Positions 7,633 through 17,033 of a stretch of DNA of 64,000 bases are shown piece after piece; position 1 is the stretch's first letter; each line of letters begins with the position of its first letter. The notes beneath the pieces were generated by a model. The model worked only from the letters and a program-made list of their open reading frames with translations, had not been told where the DNA came from and did no database searches. This stretch comes from Phaeosaccion multiseriatum (lineage: Eukaryota > Protista > Ochrophyta, other classes), in contig OZ218963.1 in NCBI GenBank assembly GCA_965112735.1, forward strand, positions 1,240,001 to 1,304,000, given 5' to 3'. A program made the position numbers and the translations under genes.

Positions 7633-10600
7633 CACACGCACGCACGGGCAAGCGTAACCGTCGCACCGCCAGACTCTTGACAGGCGTCATGAATGGCCTC
7701 CATCCTCCCCCCTCCCCCTTCTTCCTTCCCTCTCTCCCTTCCTCCTGACCTGGCACGATGTCGAAGCCCTCCCGACTCGGCCGATCCTCGCTGTGGAAGT
7801 CCGCGGACGCCTCATCAATGGACACGTGTCCATCGGTCTGCAGCGTCTTGAGCACTCGAACCCCGTCCTTGAGCCCCTCGTGGAGCGGCAGCTGAACGCC
7901 CGAGATGGACAAGTTCACCTGCGTACCGGCAGGCCACGCACTGCTGTTGAAGCCGTCGGCCGCGGAGGCCAGCCCTGCTGGTTTTAGACTGACGTTGACC
8001 GCCAGCCCGGCTCCATTGCAGGTTGCTTCGACGAGCGAGAGCGACGCATTCACACCCACGGAACTGAATGACTGATCCACTACTTGACATGCATCACTAA
8101 GTACTGTCGTGAAGTTGACAGGAAGGAGAATATACACAAAGCCCCTTGCAGGTAGGCTGTGTTGCGGGGTGAAGCTAATGTGGGCGGTGGTGAAGTTGCC
8201 GGCGACGAGAGAGTCCAGCCGCATGGAAGCCGCACGAACATGCCCAGGAGTGATGGGGGAGAGTGCGCTGGAAGTGCTGACGACCGACGCCCCGGCTGTG
8301 TTGACGGCATACACGCTGAACGTGTACGAGTGTCCGGTCACTAGGCCCGAGGTGATGTTCGTCGCTGAAGCCGCTGGTGACCCCGTGACGTTCCACTGGC
8401 CGGTGTCGCCGTGCCCTTCGTCGTCTGTACCCTCCCATATCACCACATAGCGGGTTATGACACTGTTGCGAGCGTTTGGGGCGTCCCAAGAGACTTGTGC
8501 CTGATTCAATATCTCAGCCCCGGAAACCGCCACCACGTTTGTAGGTTGGGTGGGTTCATCGTACACAGTCACCCCGCTGCCGCCCGCCGTGTTGACGCTC
8601 TCAAAGGCTGTAAAGTTGTTGGAAGAGGTACCCCAAACCTCCGTGGCGGTGAGGCTAGGTTTCCCGGCTGCCGTGTAATTGGAGCAAGTCAAGAAGGCTG
8701 AGCCTTCCATGTCCATCGCACTGTCGGTCCCAAACCCGACCGTCAGTGTTTGGGAGGCATTGGAAAGCGATGGCGTGGCTTGTGCGAGGAGCCCGCAGCC
8801 TCCGTACGACACTTGTACAGTGCTCAGTTCCAGCCGCACCTCCAACCCACCTACTTGAGTCAGACCGGTGTTGTTGGTCTCCAGGAGTGCGACTTTTAGC
8901 TCGTACATTGTCATCGCCTCGAGGTGGTCCTGCCCCAGCTCCCTCCCCGTCGATGTGAGGGATACGTCAATGGCTCCGTATATGCCTGGGGTGACAAGAC
9001 ACGACAACGCGACGGAGGAGGAAAGAGCAGGTCAAACGGAAGTACCAAGAGGAAGAGCGAGTGGAAGAGAGACAGGGCGAGACAGAGGGAGTGACAGTGG
9101 GAAAGACACAGGGCGAGCGAGACCAGAGAGCAACACAAACCAGCCCAAAGCAAAGCAAGAGAGCAAGAGCCAGGCAGGGAGCGACAGAGCAAGAGTGTAA
9201 GACTTGAGGCAAGGACAGGAGCACGGACGCACGCACACACGCACGCACACACGCACGCACACACGCATGCAACACCCACCCCTCGCCCCAGTTAGAAACC
9301 ACGCTCTACCCTCACGCTCCCTGCTACCTCCTCACTCACCCGTGGTGGACGAGACGGTCTGCGACCAGTTGCCCTGCACAGCAGTGTTATACCCGGCTAC
9401 GCGCACCCAGTAGGTGGTGCTCTGGTTGAGGCCCTGCAGCGACACCCTCGTCTCCAGCTCGTCCGTCACATTCGCACTCCACTTGCTTGCAGCGTCCGTC
9501 AACTCCGACTCCAGCGAAGCCTCAGACGTGGCGTACTCCACCACCCACCCATCCACCTCTGGCGAGCCCTCGTCCACCCACGCCAGCTCCAGCACCTCCG
9601 GTTGAGTGCGAGACACTTGCACGTTGGACGGCGTCAGCGGCACCGCGTACACTCGGATGGATGAGCTGTCGAAGACCGTCATGTTGTTGGCCGAAGAGCC
9701 GTACACCTCCGCCGCAGAGAGCATGGGCTTGCCGCCGGAGGTGAGGTTTGTGCACAGCAGGTATGCGTACTCCAGCATGGACGAGTCATCGGCGAAGGCC
9801 ACGGTGAGGGAGCTGTTGTAACTGCCGCCGCTCGACGTGGACAGGCCGCAGTCCCCATGGTCCAGGCTGTCTTGGCTCAGGGTGAGCAGCACTGACAGCC
9901 CGCCCACCTGCACCAGGCCGCTGGTATTGCTCGTCAGCCCCACTCCGATCTGGTGTGCGCGGTCCTCCTCCACGTGGTCCTGCCCCAGCTCCCTCCCCGT
10001 CGATGTGAGGGATACGTCAATGGCTCCGTATATGCCTGGGGTGACAAGACACGACGACGCGACGGAGGAGGAAAGAGCAGGTCAAACGGAAGTACCAAGA
10101 GGAAGAGCGAGTGGAAGAGAGACAGGGCGAGACAGAGGGAGTGACAGTGGAAGAGACAGGGAGAGGCAAAGCATAAGACCAAGAGCCAGGCAGGGAGCGA
10201 CAGAGCAAGAGTGTAAGACTGAGGCAAGGACAGGAGCACGGACGCACGAACGCACCCACGCACACACGCATGCCACACCCACCCCTCGCCCCAGTTAGAA
10301 ACCACGCTCTACCCTCACGCTCCCTGCTACCTCGTCACTCACCCGTGGTGGACGAGATGGTCTGCGACCAGTTGCCCTGCACAGCAGTGTTATACCCGGC
10401 TACGCGCACCCAGTAGGTGGTGCTCTGGTTGAGGCCCTGCAGCGACACCCTCGTCTCCAGCTCGTCCGTCACATTCGCACTCCACTTGCTTGCAGCGTCC
10501 GTCAACTCCGACTCCAGCGAAGCCTCAGACGTGGCGTACTCCACCACCCACCCATCCACCTCTGGCGAGCCCTCGTCCACCCACGCCAGCTCCAGCACCT

Positions 10601-13600
10601 CCGGTTGAGTGCGAGACACTTGCACGCTGGACGGCGTCAGCGGCACCGCGTACACTCGGATGGATGAGCTGTCGAAGGCCGTCATGTTGTTGGCCGAAGA
10701 GCCGTACACCTCCGCCGCAGAGAGCATGGGCTTGCCGCCGGAGGTGAGGTTTGTGCACAGCAGGTATGCGTACTCCAGCATGGACGAGTCATCGGCGAAG
10801 GCCACGGTGAGGGAGCTGCCGTAACTGCCGCCGCTCGACGTGGACAGGCCGCAGTCCCCATGGTCCAGGCTGTCTTGGCTCAGGGTGAGCAGCACCGACA
10901 GCCCGCCCACCTGCACCAGGCCGCTGGTATTGCTCGTCAGCCCCACTCCGATCTGGTGTGCGCGGTCCTCCTCCACGTGGTCCTGCCCCAGCTCCCTCCC
11001 CGTCGATGTGAGGGATACGTCAATGGCCCCGTATATGCCTGGGGTGACAAGACACGACGACGCGACGGAGGAGGAAAGAGCAGGTCAAACGGAAGAGGAA
11101 GAGCGAGTGGAAGAGACAGGGCGAGACAGAGGGAGTGACAGTGGGAAAGAGACAGGGAGAGGCAAAGCATAAGACCAAGAGCCAGGCAGGGAGCGACAGA
11201 GCAAGAGTGTAAGACTGAGGCAAGGAGAGGAGCACGGACGCACGAACGCACCCACGCACACACGCATGCCACACCCACCCCTCGCCCCAGTTAGAAACCA
11301 CGCTCTACCCTCACGCTCCCTGCTACCTCGTCACTCACCCGTGGTGGACGAGATGGTCTGCGACCAGTTGCCCTGCACAGCAGTGTTATACCCGGCTACG
11401 CGCACCCAGTAGGTGGTGCTCTGGTTGAGGCCCTGCAGCGACACCCTCGTCTCCAGCTCGTCCGTCACATTCGCACTCCACTTGCTTGCAGCGTCCGTCA
11501 ACTCCGACTCCAGCGAAGCCTCAGACGTGGCGTACTCCACCACCCACCCATCCACCTCTGGCGAGCCCTCGTCCACCCACGCCAGCTCCAGCACCTCCGG
11601 TTGAGTGCGAGACACTTGCACGTTGGACGGCGTCAGCGGCACCGCGTACACTCGGATGGATGAGCTGTCGAAGGCCGTCATGTTGTTGGCCGAAGAGCCG
11701 TACACCTCCGCCGCAGAGAGCATGGGCTTGCCGCCGGAGGTGAGGTTTGTGCACAGCAGGTATGCGTACTCCAGCATGGACGAGTCATCGGCGAAGGCCA
11801 CGGTGAGGGAGCTGCCGTAACTGCCGCCGCTCGACGTGGACAGGCCGCAGTCCCCATGGTCCAGGCTGTCTTGGCTCAGGGTGAGCAGCACCGACAGCCC
11901 GCCCACCTGCACCAGGCCGCTGGTATTGCTCGTCAGCCCCACTCCGATCTGGTGTGCGCGGTCCTCCTCCACGTGGTCCTGCCCCAGCTCCCTCCCCGTC
12001 GATGTGAGGGATACGTCAATGGCCCCGTATATGCCTGGGGTGACAAGACACGACGACGCGACGGAGGAGGAAAGAGCAGGTCAAACGGAAGAGGAAGAGC
12101 GAGTGGAAGAGACAGGGCGAGACAGAGGGAGTGACAGTGGGAAAGAGACAGGGAGAGGCAAAGCATAAGACCAAGAGCCAGGCAGGGAGCGACAGAGCAA
12201 GAGTGTAAGACTGAGGCAAGGAGAGGAGCACACGCGCACGCACATGCGCACGCACACACGCACGCACACACGCACGCACGCAGACACGCACGCCACACCC
12301 ACCCCTCGCCCCAGTTAGAAACCACGCTCTACCCTCACGCTCCCTGCTGCCTCCTCACTCACCCGTGGTGGACGAGACGGTCTGCGACCAGTTGCCCTGC
12401 ACAGCAGTGTTATACCCGGCTACGCGCACCCAGTAGGTGGTGCTCTGGTTGAGGCCCTGCAGCGACACCCTCGTCTCCAGCTCGTCCGTCACATTCGCAC
12501 TCCACTTGCTTGCAGCGTCCGTCAACTCCGACTCCAGCGAAGCCTCAGACGTGGCGTACTCCACCACCCACCCATCCACCTCTGGCGAGCCCTCGTCCAC
12601 CCACGCCAGCTCCAGCACCTCCGGTTGAGTGCGAGACACTTGCACGCTGGACGGCGTCAGCGGCACCGCGTACACTCGGATGGATGAGCTGTCGAAGGCC
12701 GTCATGTTGTTGGCCGAAGAGCCGTACACCTCCGCCGCAGAGAGCATGGGCTTGCCGCCGGAGGTGAGGTTTGTGCACAGCAGGTATGCGTACTCCAGCA
12801 TGGACGAGTCATCGGCGAAGGCCACGGTGAGGGAGCTGCCGTAACTGCCGCCGCTCGACGTGGACAGGCCGCAGTCCCCATGGTCCAGGCTGTCTTGGCT
12901 CAGGGTGAGCAGCACCGACAGCCCGCCCACCTGCACCAGGCCGCTGGTATTGCTCGTCAGCCCCACTCCGATCTGGTGTGCGCGGTCCTCCTCCACGTGG
13001 TCCTGCCCCAGCTCCCTCCCCGTCGATGTGAGGGATACGTCAATGGCTCCGTATATGCCTGGGGTGACAAGACACAACGACGCGACGGAGGAGGAAAGAG
13101 CAGGTCAAACGGAAGTACCAAGAGGAAGAGCGAGTGGAAGAGACAGGGCGAGACAGAGGGAGTGACAGTGGGAAAGAGGCAGGGAGAGGCAAAGCATAAG
13201 ACCAAGAGCCAGGCAGGGAGCGACAGAGCAAGAGTGTAAGACTGAGGCAAGGAGAGGAGCACACGCGCACGCACATGCGCACACACACACGCACGCACAC
13301 ACGCGCGCACGCACGCACGCCACACCCACCCCTCGCCCCAGTTAGAAACCACGCTCTACCCTCACGCTCCCTGCTACCTCCTCACTCACCCGTGGTGGAC
13401 GAGACGGTCTGCGACCAGTTGCCCTGCACAGCAGTGTTATACCCGGCTACGCGCACCCAGTAGGTGGTGCTCTGGTTGAGGCCCTGCAGCGACACCCTCG
13501 TCTCCAGCTCGTCCGTCACATTCGCACTCCACTTGCTTGCAGCGTCCGTCAACTCCGACTCCAGCGAAGCCTCAGACGTGGCGTACTCCACCACCCACCC

Positions 13601-14608
13601 ATCCACCTCTGGCGAGCCCTCGTCCACCCACGCCAGCTCCAGCACCTCCGGTTGAGTGCGAGACACTTGCACGCTGGACGGCGTCAGCGGCACCGCGTAC
13701 ACTCGGATGGATGAGCTGTCGAAGGCCGTCATGTTGTTGGCCGAAGAGCCGTACACCTCCGCCGCAGAGAGCATGGGCTTGCCGCCGGAGGTGAGGTTTG
13801 TGCACAGCAGGTATGCGTACTCCAGCATGGACGAGTCATCGGCGAAGGCCACGGTGAGGGAGCTGCCGTAACTGCCGCCGCTCGACGTGGACAGGCCGCA
13901 GTCCCCATGGTCCAGGCTGTCTTGGCTCAGGGTGAGCAGCACCGACAGCCCGCCCACCTGCACCAGGCCGCTGGTATTGCTCGTCAGCCCCACTCCGATC
14001 TGGTGTGCGCGGTCCTCCTCCACGTGGTCCTGCCCCAGCTCCCTCCCCGTCGATGTGAGGGATACGTCAATGGCCCCATATATTCCTTGGCGGGGGCAGA
14101 AGGATTTTGTCACAGCGAAGGACGTTAGCATACTAGGGCAAGGGCATTGAAGAGAGGAAGCCACAACACGGGTTTTGCTCTGCGTGCTATCATACCCTCC
14201 ACGCTAAGATTTGACCGCACGCCCTTTTTGCTCACCCGTAGACCTCGATATAGACTCAGATGAGCTTCCTGTGCCGTTTACATTAAATCCAGCCACTTTG
14301 ATGAAGTATGTCGTGCTCTGATTTAAGCCCGTCAAGATCTTGCTCTTTTGGGCAGCAGAAGCCGACCATTTATCCTCGCGAGTCTCGCTTGCATCCGGCG
14401 ATGCCTGTGAAGTGCTGTACTCCACAGTCCAGCCCTCTGCGCTCGGCGATCCGTCATCTACCCACCCGACCTCTAGCGTCGCCGGCTGGGCCGACAAGAC
14501 GTCCAGCTCGGTGGGCGGCAAGGGCAGACCACTCTGGGCCGAGCTCTGCTCCACGCGGACGAGGAGCAACAGGGCCAAAACGAGTGTCTGGGCCAGCAGC
14601 AGCATCAT
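1..14608 (-). CDS. Giant secreted/cell-surface protein: signal peptide, 7 fibronectin type III domains and Ig-like repeats (3' end outside window; >=2,634 aa in window)
   Basis: Signal peptide MMLLLAQTLVLALLLLVRVEQSSAQ. FN3 motifs (P..P..V.V...LELAW...GWVVEY...GLNQSTTYWVRVAGYN...G.WS). Many N-x-S/T sequons. Phase-consistent GT-AG exons: 14608-14236, 14085-13390, 13058-12363, 12034-11339, 11038-10343, 10035-9340, 8985-7750, 7292-6886, 6683-6587, 6010-5844, 5576-5226, 4920-4685, 4378-3870, 3519-3472, 2963-2869, 2447-2274, 1693-1624, 1346-1226, 728-339, 148-<1. Confidence 0.85.
925..1236. repeat. 33-38-bp intronic minisatellite (consensus gatacgcctactgctcatgctcacactcaccatt); each unit carries a copy of the exon end and 5' splice site
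   Basis: About 8 copies of ctcaccattg (minus strand CAATG|GTGAGT). The last copy, at 1221-1230, is the real exon/intron junction. Confidence 0.9.
3120..3460. repeat. Intronic (CCCT)n/(GAGG)n microsatellite
   Basis: Directly visible ~340-bp imperfect tetranucleotide tract next to the donor at 3471. Confidence 0.95.
3726..3859. repeat. Intronic (GTCA)n microsatellite
   Basis: Directly visible tetranucleotide tract next to the donor at 3869. Confidence 0.95.
6121..6410. repeat. Intronic (GACA)n microsatellite
   Basis: Directly visible ~290-bp tract. It produces the spurious CLSV-repeat ORFs. Confidence 0.95.
8924..14085 (-). repeat. Tandem array of five ~1.0-kb exon+intron units (696-bp exon plus 300-354-bp intron), plus the first ~60 nt of a sixth, divergent exon
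   Basis: Exon starts at 14085, 13058, 12034, 11038, 10035 and 8985 (periods 1027, 1024, 996, 1003, 1050). The translated cassettes differ at only a handful of residues. Introns differ mainly in (CACG/CA)n length and small indels. Confidence 0.97.
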
Positions 14609-14993: not shown

Positions 14994-15543
14994 CTATGCT
15001 TTGAGTGCGTACCGCCGGACGGGGAAGTTGGCCGCTCGCTTGGCTGCGCGAGTCGTCTTGAGGCCGGCCTGCTTCTTGGTGAGTTGCCTGCGAATGGCAC
15101 GGGTCTTCTTCGCCCTCAAGTCGAGGGGAATGTACTTGGCCTTGGCATACTGCTCCCGGAGCTGTGTGGGGTGGGGTAGTGTCGGGCGGGCAAACACACA
15201 TTGGGGTCGGAGGCGGTGTAGGGTGAGGAGAGGGCGCGACGAGAAGTGTACTACATTCCTTCTACTTTGCGGACCCGCATAATGAACATCGCCCTAACAG
15301 GAGAGTGGAAGACAAAGCTGCTGCCACACACTAAACTAAGGCATTGGTTGCGCTGGCTGCTGCTGCTTCTCGCCCCTCTCAAACCTCTTGTCACCGCCAC
15401 TGACCTTCTCCTTTTGCGTCTGGTTGTAGACGGTGAGGACGCGGGCGATGGACTTGCGCACCACCTTGATCTTCGCCAACTTGGAGGCGGCACCGGCGGT
15501 CACCTTGGCCACGCGCAGCTGTGTGTGTGTGCGTGTGTGTGTG

Positions 15544-15588
<45 letters not shown>

Positions 15589-17033
15589 GCGTGTGCATAT
15601 ACGATACGTCGATGGAGTGGGGGTGCGGGGTGCATGATGGAGAAGGAGCAAGTGGTCATGCATAGCATTGGATGATAGAAGAGCAAGTGGCCATGCATTG
15701 CAATGGATGATAGAAGGAAGGGCATTGCAATTGCGCGGGGGAGAGCCGCGTCGCGCCACGTGGATGAGCACCTTACGTAAGCACCTTTTACGAAGCAGCA
15801 TTGGCAAAAAGACCCAAGGAAGGGGAGGGCAGAGAGGGAGAAGAGAGAGACTATGGCAGGAGAAGAAGATGCGACAAACAAGCCTCCGCCGCAGGAGCAG
15901 CGTCAATACCAGTGCCGAACCACCAAGCCTCCCCCGCTTGCGACAACCAACGCACGCACCTGCGAGAGCTCGAGCCTGAGGTCCTCAAGCTGCCTGCTCA
16001 GGTCAGCCTTGCTCTTAGTGCGGAGCTCGTGCGCCTTGACCTTGACTGTAAGCGAGAAGGGGGGAAGAGAAGACGGGGTGGAGCAGATGAAGGGGCGGCT
16101 GGGTGAGTGAGAGGGAGGGGCGGGGGGAGGCTTCGACCTTCGAGTCACAAAAGAGGGTAGAATAGAAGGAAGACCAGGAGACTGTCTGCGGAGACCGGAC
16201 GCGTAGGAAAAATACCGCCTGCCGCAGATACGTCTCGAATCTTCTTGGTCCTTCCTGACTGTGTAAGGACTGGACTGCCATGCCAGAGCTCTCCCAAACG
16301 CCCCATCATCATCATCCTCCTCCTCCTCCTCCTCCTTAGCCCTCTTCGCTCCGCTCGCCCTCTCCTCGTCGTCATCCACACTCCTCTGGCCCATAAAACA
16401 AGCGTTAACGACAGCCGCCAAGGTGACCAAAAGCTCTGTGCTGCTCAGCCAGGGGTTCTTCACACAAATCGCTCCGGAAGGTCAGGCCACAAAGCGAAGA
16501 GGGGCCGGAGGCCACGGAATGCGGCTGCAGTATACCAAATCGCTGTCCAATTAAGGGACTCCGCCTCCATTGCTGACAGTTGTGCTGCTGCGGCTCCTTC
16601 TCACCACATGTCCGTCATGCTCAGATCCTGCCCTCAAGCGTTTGCGGGGCTATCATAGCAGCAGCAGTAGCAGTAGCAGCAGTATGGTTCGCCCTCAACA
16701 TATACGAGCCCGGGCTGTCACTGAATACCAACCCCACCTCTCGCCCCCCCCAAGTGGCCTGTGCTTCCCAAGCTTCCCCCACGCAGGCCATTATTGTTGG
16801 CTGAGAAATGTGGAAGCGTATGATCCACCGTACGGGATCTGATGTTAGCATTGCAGTCAGCCAGCTCCCAAGGCATCCTTTCGCCGTGGACGGTACGACA
16901 GCGGCAGGCAGCAGCAGCAAAATGCCAGCCCACAGGAGAGACCTTGCTGCCAATGCCAACATTCTTGCCTTCCGACTCGCGCAAGGTGAGAGAAGCCGGA
17001 GAAACCGAAAGAGCACTTCTGTCCACCACGAGG

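Follow-up and report, generated by a model that had tools for sequence, protein, structure and literature searches.

A five-copy array of near-identical, in-frame exon-intron cassettes in a secreted-protein gene of Phaeosaccion multiseriatum

How did five almost identical exons, each with its own intron, come to stand head to tail in one protist gene, and could their number serve to vary the encoded protein? The locus lies on the minus strand of a 64,000-nt stretch of Phaeosaccion multiseriatum DNA (the window), for which a sequence-only reading had proposed a giant surface protein with a stalk of adjustable length, varied by unequal crossover and/or by exon skipping. Exons of the window were located by motif scan and direct reading of the sequence, and protein searches were run singly, per exon or per open stretch. 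The five-cassette exon-intron array was confirmed as first described. The gene encodes a large multidomain protein that is secreted and belongs to a lineage-restricted family, “(X-FN3)n”, in which a domain here termed X precedes a fibronectin type III (FN3) domain.

Gene layout and the repeat unit

Exon 1 (14236–14608, minus strand, as are all features below) starts with ATG and encodes a signal peptide, with the hydrophobic core LLLAQTLVLALLLLV followed by ...SSAQS, and the first FN3 domain; it was read to end in phase 1 at ACG G/GTGAGC (slash, splice site). Intron 0 (14086–14235) forms the upstream edge of the repeat and is unrelated to introns 1–5, its ~48% identity to the other introns being at chance level. 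Then follow the five 696-nt cassette exons: exon 1 of the array at 13390–14085 (phase 1-1, X plus FN3), exon 2 at 12363–13058, encoding the same protein as copy 1, exon 3 at 11339–12034, which departs from copy 1 by S138N and V228I, exon 4 at 10343–11038, which differs from copy 3 at a single nucleotide, and exon 5 at 9340–10035, the most divergent copy (G74N, A121V and S138N), in which G74N creates an additional N-x-S sequon. The introns read as spliceosomal, GT-AG introns. Intron 1 (13059–13389, 331 nt, GTGAGT...CAG) holds a (GCAC)n-type microsatellite; intron 2 (12035–12362, 328 nt) is 98.5% identical to intron 1; intron 3 (11039–11338, 300 nt) is 99.7% identical to intron 4 (10036–10342, 307 nt); and intron 5 (8986–9339, 354 nt) is homologous to introns 1–4 apart from two private insertions. 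Microsatellites are dense throughout the genome of this species.

Beyond the array, exon 7 (7750–8985, 1236 nt, phase 1-1) encodes an older, diverged X domain (X′, with an amino acid identity of 56% by HMMER and 51% by tblastn), an FN3 domain and one more domain without a family. Its proposed donor, CCAG/GTCAGG at 7750/7749, was supported by a matching ...DI.PG motif in the homolog P0001. The open stretches further downstream were mostly blank in Pfam except for Calx-beta and Laminin_G_3.

The acceptor of the first cassette is AAG/GA and those of copies 2–5 are CAG/GC, while all donors read ...ACG G/GTGAGT; all junctions are therefore in phase 1, including the end of exon 1 and the start of exon 7 at 8985, and a Gly codon is rebuilt at every splice junction. 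Both the symmetric phase-1 character of the five exons and the frame compatibility of every donor with every later acceptor, as claimed in the sequence-only reading, were thus borne out. Pairwise, the exon copies differ at 1–8 of 696 nt (98.9–99.9% identity) and their proteins at 0–4 of 232 residues. Introns 1–5 share 94.7–99.7% pairwise identity over aligned columns, bar microsatellite-type indels, in agreement with the proposal that they had been duplicated together with the exons.

In total, the array comprises 5.06 copies of a ~1.0-kb unit, with five units of 996–1050 nt. At its 3′ edge, nucleotides 1–62 of exon 7 (8985–8924) match copies 2 and 5 at 100% identity, and similarity to the cassettes collapses past this point; position 8924, given as the array boundary before, is exactly where repeat homology ends. 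At the 5′ edge, copy-1-specific differences are confined to the first 11 nt of that copy. A genome search found the cassette DNA absent from the rest of the 67-Mb assembly, which consists of 22 contigs.

We scanned for hydrophobic segments in all minus-strand frames, over a span running from window position 15000 to a point 16 kb past the start of the window. No transmembrane anchor was found in these ~27 kb of the gene: the scan returned the signal peptide, whose core was the sole convincing hydrophobic segment, and low-complexity intron translations only. This leaves the “surface” assignment unproven. The array directly follows the signal peptide and one FN3 domain, with Calx-beta and Laminin_G_3 encoded in downstream exons, a distal-tip location that makes the term “stalk” doubtful for what is not an anchor-to-head segment. 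With no anchor found and the array at the N-terminal tip, a length-tuning role is not established, and the adhesion and virus-evasion roles suggested for the protein are speculation.

The X domain and the cassette fold

Each cassette encodes a ~133-aa two-Cys beta-sandwich, X, followed by FN3. The Pfam fn3 profile matched cassette residues 134–229 at 36.6 bits, above the curated gathering cut-off of 25, which places the domain in the FN3 family (PF00041); the same profile scored 34.8 bits (E 2e-8) in exon 1 and 42.2 bits in exon 7. Cassette residues 1–133 had no Pfam match, and none of 23 X domains matched Pfam (0/23). The Cys pair of X, C62 and C94, was invariant over 22–23 family members. 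These results upheld the predicted order of a ~130-aa domain with a Cys pair and an FN3 domain.

Structure prediction of one cassette and a homology search for X had both been suggested on the basis of the sequence. The cassette model (pLDDT 91.9, pTM 0.79) consisted of two beta-sandwiches and superposed on tandem FN3/Ig and cohesin-FN3 pairs; its FN3 part was a seven-strand sandwich resembling tandem FN3 structures, and X modelled alone reached a pLDDT of 91.2. The best Foldseek match of X was the cohesin-like 2jh2 (E 2.5e-4, TM 0.59). VIA-align produced a flat top list of unrelated beta-sandwiches (Z 9.1–8.0), with the transglutaminase C-terminal domain, cohesin, Calx-beta and intimin D0 as top matches. 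A profile search of PDB sequences with X gave nothing at E ≤ 1, and an ESM Atlas feature search returned the weak leads CARDB, DUF11 and NPCBM_assoc at 0.81–0.84 (guide value 0.9). Assignment of X to a named cohesin, Calx-beta or CARDB type was not supported, there being no profile match and no structural match clearly above background. X shares the Ig-like fold class, a likeness that does not by itself make it a member of any of these families.

Relatives of X proved scarce. An exhaustive search of 1.84 billion (1.84e9) representative proteins gave three matches, two of them credible; the third, P0002, was a low-complexity repeat and was regarded as spurious. A word-index protein search with the 231-aa cassette returned zero matches, and an exact 33-nt cassette pattern was absent from JGI metagenome contigs. 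X is a confidently folding two-Cys Ig-like module, without a Pfam family and with hardly any detectable relatives, and it merits a family definition of its own. Judging from Ig-like domain size, each unit presumably contributes roughly 8 nm, along with six N-glycosylation sequons. Several giant proteins of the Phaeosaccion multiseriatum genome are built from the X domain.

Origin of the array and alternative explanations

Variants are shared among the copies in a mosaic pattern. Sites 412 (copies 3 and 5) and 681 (copies 3 and 4) display all four combinations, as do sites 11 (copies 2 and 5) and 412, in violation of the four-gamete rule. Copies 2 and 3 have in common a 7-nt deletion at the 3′ end of the intron, and copies 3 and 4 share the exon and the 5′ part of the intron that come next, so that the shared-variant blocks are out of register with the exon and unit boundaries. 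Such a staggered register would be expected from crossovers inside introns, and the mosaic as a whole fits unequal crossover and gene conversion, consistent with the earlier proposal that these processes act on the array. The graded similarity, highest between introns 3 and 4, lower between introns 1 and 2, and with copy 5 farthest, fits successive rounds of duplication.

The unit has been expanded elsewhere in the family. A paralog on contig C3 contains four super-repeats of 1.64–1.70 kb, the leading ~1 kb of which is 94–100% identical; the sole predicted intron of this array sits within a cassette, not between cassettes. In the homolog P0001 (locus L010), from another organism (65% GC) and an independent metagenome assembly, a 633-nt in-frame X-FN3 unit is duplicated with ≤5 mismatches in 667 nt and is intronless. 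The expansions therefore do not depend on splicing, and these two further, independent cassette duplications point to DNA recombination rather than splicing as their driver.

We consider it probable that the array is a real and recent tandem amplification in an (X-FN3)n secreted-protein gene, made and reshuffled by unequal recombination and conversion. Unequal homologous recombination between misaligned repeats would have made the array and would reshuffle it still, with gene conversion acting alongside. Since a unit consists of a single frame-symmetric exon and the intron belonging to it, the reading frame survives every gain or loss, and each added unit would bring two folded beta-sandwich domains, the two-Cys Ig-like X and FN3, to the N-terminal distal end. 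We infer that strains or alleles differ in copy number and that this difference tunes the reach of the protein tip or its binding valency; given the N-terminal location of the array, valency may be tuned as readily as length. Exon skipping is permitted by the frame, is not needed for this model and is probably rare.

A less probable, though still substantial, alternative is that a neutral tandem duplication happened to be in frame and was tolerated, its copy number having no adaptive role. Recombination in repeat-rich genes commonly gives rise to tandem copies of symmetric exons as a by-product, the genome is microsatellite-dense and X has no known function. The coding differences among the copies (four silent and four replacement events) carry little information on selection and give no clear sign of it. 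However, near-identical copies of the two-domain unit have arisen in three independent expansions, in two organisms, which suggests something beyond a one-off accident, although recombination-prone repeats could yield three expansions without selection.

The same variants could, with lower probability, reflect an old array held uniform by concerted evolution through coding-biased gene conversion, with a copy number that is perhaps stable. Silent exon sites are far less variable than intron sites (1–2 of ~171 versus 23 of ~290; Fisher p about 0.0003–0.001), the mosaic suits conversion equally well as crossover, and in C3 the 94–100% identity of the coding tracts stands beside an adjoining intron that aligns at just 36–60%, a contrast typical of exon-limited conversion. 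On the other hand, the introns in the window are themselves 94.7–99.7% identical and align over their full length. Other repeats of the X-FN3 family within one gene are only 35–45% identical, so most have not been homogenised, and the sharp edge 62 nt into exon 7 resembles a duplication or crossover breakpoint.

Exon skipping, regulated or stochastic, that yields isoforms with 0–5 cassettes from a single allele appears improbable as the purpose of the array. In its favour, every junction between exon 1 and exon 7 has the same phase and rebuilds a Gly codon, and the five donors and five acceptors are near-identical, so any skip would stay in frame. Against it, a retained intron would introduce a stop after two codons (G/GT GAG TGA), truncating the protein after Gly-Glu. 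Since the copies are almost identical, skipping could alter cassette number only. The introns are short (300–354 nt) and the exons long (696 nt); in genes of this architecture splice sites are normally paired across the intron, nearest-neighbour splicing and intron retention usually prevail, and skipping is rare compared with retention. Identical splice sites mark no individual exon for regulation, the public collections searched yielded neither a protein nor a contig that matched, and the intronless L010 and the intra-cassette intron of C3 indicate that the family expands without such a splicing layout.

Still less credible is an assembly artefact, in which the true copy number would be lower or higher, the repeat having been mis-resolved or haplotypes stacked. 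Assemblers are prone to errors in arrays of 1-kb units that are 99% identical, and the five copies are known from one assembly. Each copy can nevertheless be told from the others by SNPs and microsatellite lengths of its own, the variants are arranged in an ordered mosaic and not as pairs of duplicated haplotypes, and the array, at just 5.2 kb, is within reach of single long reads in a 67-Mb assembly of only 22 contigs; comparable arrays also occur in the paralog and in the independent metagenome assembly. A mutually exclusive exon array was rejected because the copies are nearly identical (0–4 of 232 residues), and a mobile element or virus because the unit is confined to one gene and encodes ordinary extracellular domains.

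Comparison with known variable repeat proteins

As matters stand, a recent tandem duplication is well documented, its mechanism would be one known in kind, and its use for diversification is a proposal. Human LPA and bacterial surface proteins already provide examples of such duplications. Were the copy number variable, the gene would offer a clean protist case of a length- or valency-variable extracellular protein assembled from whole exon-intron units, and would bring a principle familiar from human LPA and from surface proteins of bacteria and yeast into the cell-surface biology of algae.

In the yeast FLO1 and ALS families, cell-surface adhesins contain in-frame coding repeats whose number is changed by recombination, altering adhesion. 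Those repeats are short, mostly unstructured, Ser/Thr-rich and contained within one exon, whereas each unit here carries 232 aa of folded domains and its own intron. Tandem exon duplications of the Dscam type (PMC8373072 for human cases) likewise place exons of compatible phase side by side, but Dscam-type exons are diverged and one is chosen per transcript. With copies that differ by 0–4 aa, the choice of one over another would add hardly any diversity, and only their number could vary.

The closer likeness is to the coding VNTR of kringle IV type 2 (KIV-2) in human LPA, also a tandem in-frame array in a secreted-protein gene. Both arrays consist of head-to-tail units of whole exons plus introns that preserve the frame, the units being near-identical with their introns included and built of folded modules. 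In LPA, two exons make up a unit that encodes one kringle; here the 1.0-kb unit has a single symmetric exon encoding two domains. The X and FN3 domains are unrelated to LPA kringles, the host is an alga-like protist and the array is known as five copies in one assembly.

The folded domains of Periscope Proteins stand in tandem and are encoded by DNA repeats with very high identity, which breaks the usual rule of <50% identity between adjacent domains, and gains or losses by intragenic recombination are proposed to vary the length of their extracellular rods (PMC8201768). We compared the array with SHIRT-repeat Sgo_0707, SasG and Rib/alpha-C. Here, too, tandem folded domains are encoded by highly identical DNA repeats. 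In SasG, two unlike modules alternate, as they do in the present array, so that identical domains are never direct neighbours. Unlike these bacterial proteins, (X-FN3)n is encoded by a eukaryotic gene with an intron per unit; Periscope repeats lie between a wall anchor and a head domain, whereas the array occupies the N-terminal tip of a protein in which no anchor was found. Strain-to-strain length variation defines Periscope Proteins, and a eukaryotic gene seen in one assembly can be said to work like the class, not to belong to it.

It is possible, though doubtful, that (X-FN3)n is a eukaryotic Periscope counterpart, in which selection keeps the cassette DNA identical and so allows frequent change of number by unequal recombination. 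Cassette number would then change within populations or even clonal cultures. This would tune the reach or binding valency of the distal, glycosylated end of a giant extracellular protein and thereby influence cell-cell and cell-surface contacts or those with grazers or viruses; the packaging of whole phase 1-1 exons would also permit occasional in-frame skipping. Judged by its sequence, the array is a new member of the LPA KIV-2 type of coding repeat that would work like the bacterial Periscope Proteins.

Organization of the cassette array

The array lies on the minus strand of a eukaryotic, microsatellite-dense window of ~59% GC. The gene starts with exon 1 (14608-14236), whose ATG at 14608 opens a classical signal peptide followed by an FN3 domain, and which ends in the phase-1 donor ACG G|GTGAGC. 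After the 150-nt intron 0, which is unrelated to introns 1-5, come five cassette exons of 696 nt (14085-13390, 13058-12363, 12034-11339, 11038-10343 and 10035-9340), each with AG directly before it and GTGAGT directly after, and then exon 7 (8985-7750; 1236 nt, phase 1-1), all on the minus strand. The cassette exons are likewise phase 1-1, because their two 5′ bases finish a Gly codon and the G at the 3′ end opens the next. They differ pairwise by 1-8 nt and 0-4 residues, and introns 1-5 (331, 328, 300, 307 and 354 nt) share 94.7-99.7% identity in the aligned columns, with differences mainly in microsatellite-like indels. Most unit-length differences stem from a (GCAC)n/(GCACACACGCAC)n microsatellite of copy-specific length (9221-9279, 12228-12293 and 13259-13329), no long version of which occurs in introns 3 and 4.

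The sequence-only reading had described five phase-1 exons with co-duplicated introns at 8924-14085; the minus-strand sequence and the exon and intron alignments bore out every detail, and the coordinates were exact. The first 62 nt of exon 7, where the repeat ends, match copies 2 and 5 perfectly before abrupt divergence, so that the array amounts to 5.06 units. No further occurrence of cassette DNA was found in the assembly (67.1 Mb, 22 contigs searched). The array is a tandem amplification, either recent or actively homogenised. Directly upstream (14997-16463, minus strand), open stretches resemble ribosomal protein L35/uL29 by eye; if this reading holds, only ~400 nt separate the end of that gene from the ATG at 14608.

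The X domain and its relatives

Pfam placed an FN3 domain at cassette residues 134-229 and found no match in residues 1-133 (the X domain), nor did any of the 23 X domains of the family match a Pfam model; a profile built from these 23 domains matched no PDB sequence. The AlphaFold2 model of one cassette, based on a 22-sequence family alignment, consisted of two confident beta-sandwiches (mean pLDDT 91.9, pTM 0.79; pLDDT 91.2 for X modelled alone) and could be superposed on FN3/Ig domains arranged in tandem as well as on a cohesin-FN3 pair from a clostridial protein. For X alone, Foldseek ranked cohesin-like modules best (E 2.5e-4, TM 0.59), and an exhaustive structural scan returned a flat list (Z 9.1-8.0) of unrelated Ig-like sandwiches, including transglutaminase C-terminal domains, cohesin, Calx-beta and intimin D0. 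The missing Pfam and PDB-sequence matches, together with this flat list, indicate that X, as modelled, adopts a common Ig-like fold and constitutes an undescribed family. C62 and C94 of X are invariant in the family alignment. Thus, the proposed pairing of an unassigned, two-cysteine, beta-rich domain with FN3 in each cassette was upheld by Pfam, the cysteines and the predicted fold. An NNFT sequon is kept in most family members (NNMT in the window's own cassettes), and the translation reads six N-x-S/T sequons per cassette. The predicted fold, cysteine pair and sequons fit a glycosylated, disulfide-bonded extracellular module. In copy 5 alone, an adjacent double substitution, GG>AA at 9815-9817 (G74N; SYGSS to SYNSS), creates a seventh N-glycosylation sequon.

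An exhaustive search with X among 1.84 billion representative proteins yielded only two credible relatives, P0001 and a 166-aa fragment; the same or a close species had no match among public proteins and metagenome contigs. P0001, the only long homologue, has 3015 aa and comes from an ENA metagenome assembly, where its gene lies on a eukaryotic contig of 514 kb (L010; ERZ28548061, contig_25368; 65% GC). It consists of (X-FN3)x5, a domain like the exon 7 tail (Y) and at least 10 TIG domains; after it comes a TIG/Reelin open frame of 6858 aa. Neighbouring genes on L010 encode myosin head, PH and S1 domains. Within the P. multiseriatum assembly, X occurs ~25 times in a gene on contig C3 (4.376-4.400 Mb) and ~12 times in one on contig C11 (1.049-1.065 Mb). 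X and FN3 alternate there with a ~690-nt period, and the majority of the cassettes adjoin within one open frame, intronless between, at 35-45% mutual identity.

Recombination and splicing as proposed sources of variation

No single tree fits the variable sites of the five units. Copies {3,5} go together at site 412 and copies {3,4} at site 681, with all four combinations present; site 799 groups {1,5}, in conflict with a 24-nt block common to {1,2}; site 11 groups {2,5}, a state also found in exon 7; sites 848 and 992 group {4,5}, and copies {2,3} have in common a 7-nt deletion close to the 3′ end of the intron. The shared-variant blocks are staggered: the intron 3′ end of unit n and the body of unit n+1 have a common history, a pattern that matches exactly what unequal crossovers breaking inside introns would produce. 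Intron identity is graded (99.7% for 3/4 and 98.5% for 1/2, with unit 5 most distant), which suggests several rounds of duplication. Variable columns are more frequent in introns (23/~290 ungapped) than in exons (9/696; p = 5e-7), and introns also exceed silent exon sites (p ~0.0003-0.001). This excess would reflect either better homogenisation of the coding part by conversion or faster mutation of the microsatellite-like introns.

Similar expansions arose elsewhere in the family. The P0001 gene carries an intronless tandem duplicate of a 633-nt (211-codon) X-FN3 unit (L010:10389-11688), in which no more than 5 of 667 nt are mismatched. The paralogous C3 gene contains four super-repeats of 1640-1699 nt (C3:4383455-4390117, plus strand), each comprising two cassettes with an intron within the second X. 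Neighbouring super-repeats are 94-100% identical over the initial ~1 kb of coding DNA and the intron aligns at 36-60% only, a pattern that looks like exon-biased homogenisation. Since introns mark every cassette boundary in only one of these three independent near-identical expansions of the same two-domain unit in two organisms, their common denominator is DNA-level repeat recombination, and phase 1-1 exon packaging is, judged from these sequences, unnecessary for them.

Exon skipping, the other proposed source of variation, is frame-compatible given the uniform phase, but the identical splice sites, short introns and long exons argue against skipping itself. On the minus strand, the donor of each cassette reads G|GT GAG TGA (13381-13389 and the equivalent place behind the other copies), so that a retained intron brings a stop after Gly-Glu; retention would yield either truncated secreted proteins of 1-5 cassettes or transcripts subject to mRNA decay. 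The original interpretation is supported in part: recombination-driven expansion stands on the mosaic variants and recurrent family expansions, and no support emerged for diversification through splicing, for a role as a stalk or for evasion of viruses.

The encoded protein and comparable repeats

Searches were run exon by exon or per open stretch rather than on the joined full-length protein. The gene extends on the minus strand at least ~27 kb downstream, beyond the window start, and encodes more repeats that are unassigned, as well as one Calx-beta and one Laminin_G_3 (ConA-like) domain. Its likely 3′ part (L007:394-1634 and L008:7406-9977, downstream stretches corresponding to window -8366 to -12594, minus strand) has the Calx-beta domain split by an intron and the Laminin_G_3/ConA-like domain; its last open stretch lacks a hydrophobic anchor. 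No transmembrane segment beyond the signal peptide was found in the ~27 kb scanned; of the suggested giant surface protein, the signal peptide thus supports secretion, but not surface anchoring. The array adds ten predicted beta-sandwich domains directly after the signal peptide and first FN3, and P0001 and the window gene alike have their (X-FN3)n block at the N-terminal, distal end.

Each added unit would contribute ~8 nm and one further X domain, giving longer reach or higher binding valency; the latter is conceivable because the array forms the distal tip, the likeness of X to binding modules being one of fold only. As two unlike folds alternate, identical domains are never direct neighbours, which may ease the misfolding of identical tandem domains discussed in PMC8201768. 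Unequal recombination changes copy number in human LPA KIV-2 (PMC11462820, PMC6314250) and, as proposed, in bacterial Periscope Proteins (PMC8201768), and by this analogy the copy number of the array is probably polymorphic. The array itself is a coding repeat whose units are whole exon-intron pairs, of the already known kind that works in the manner of LPA KIV-2 or the Periscope Proteins. A modest addition to this is the Ig-like domain family of X, undescribed and lineage-restricted, from which several giant proteins of the P. multiseriatum genome are built.
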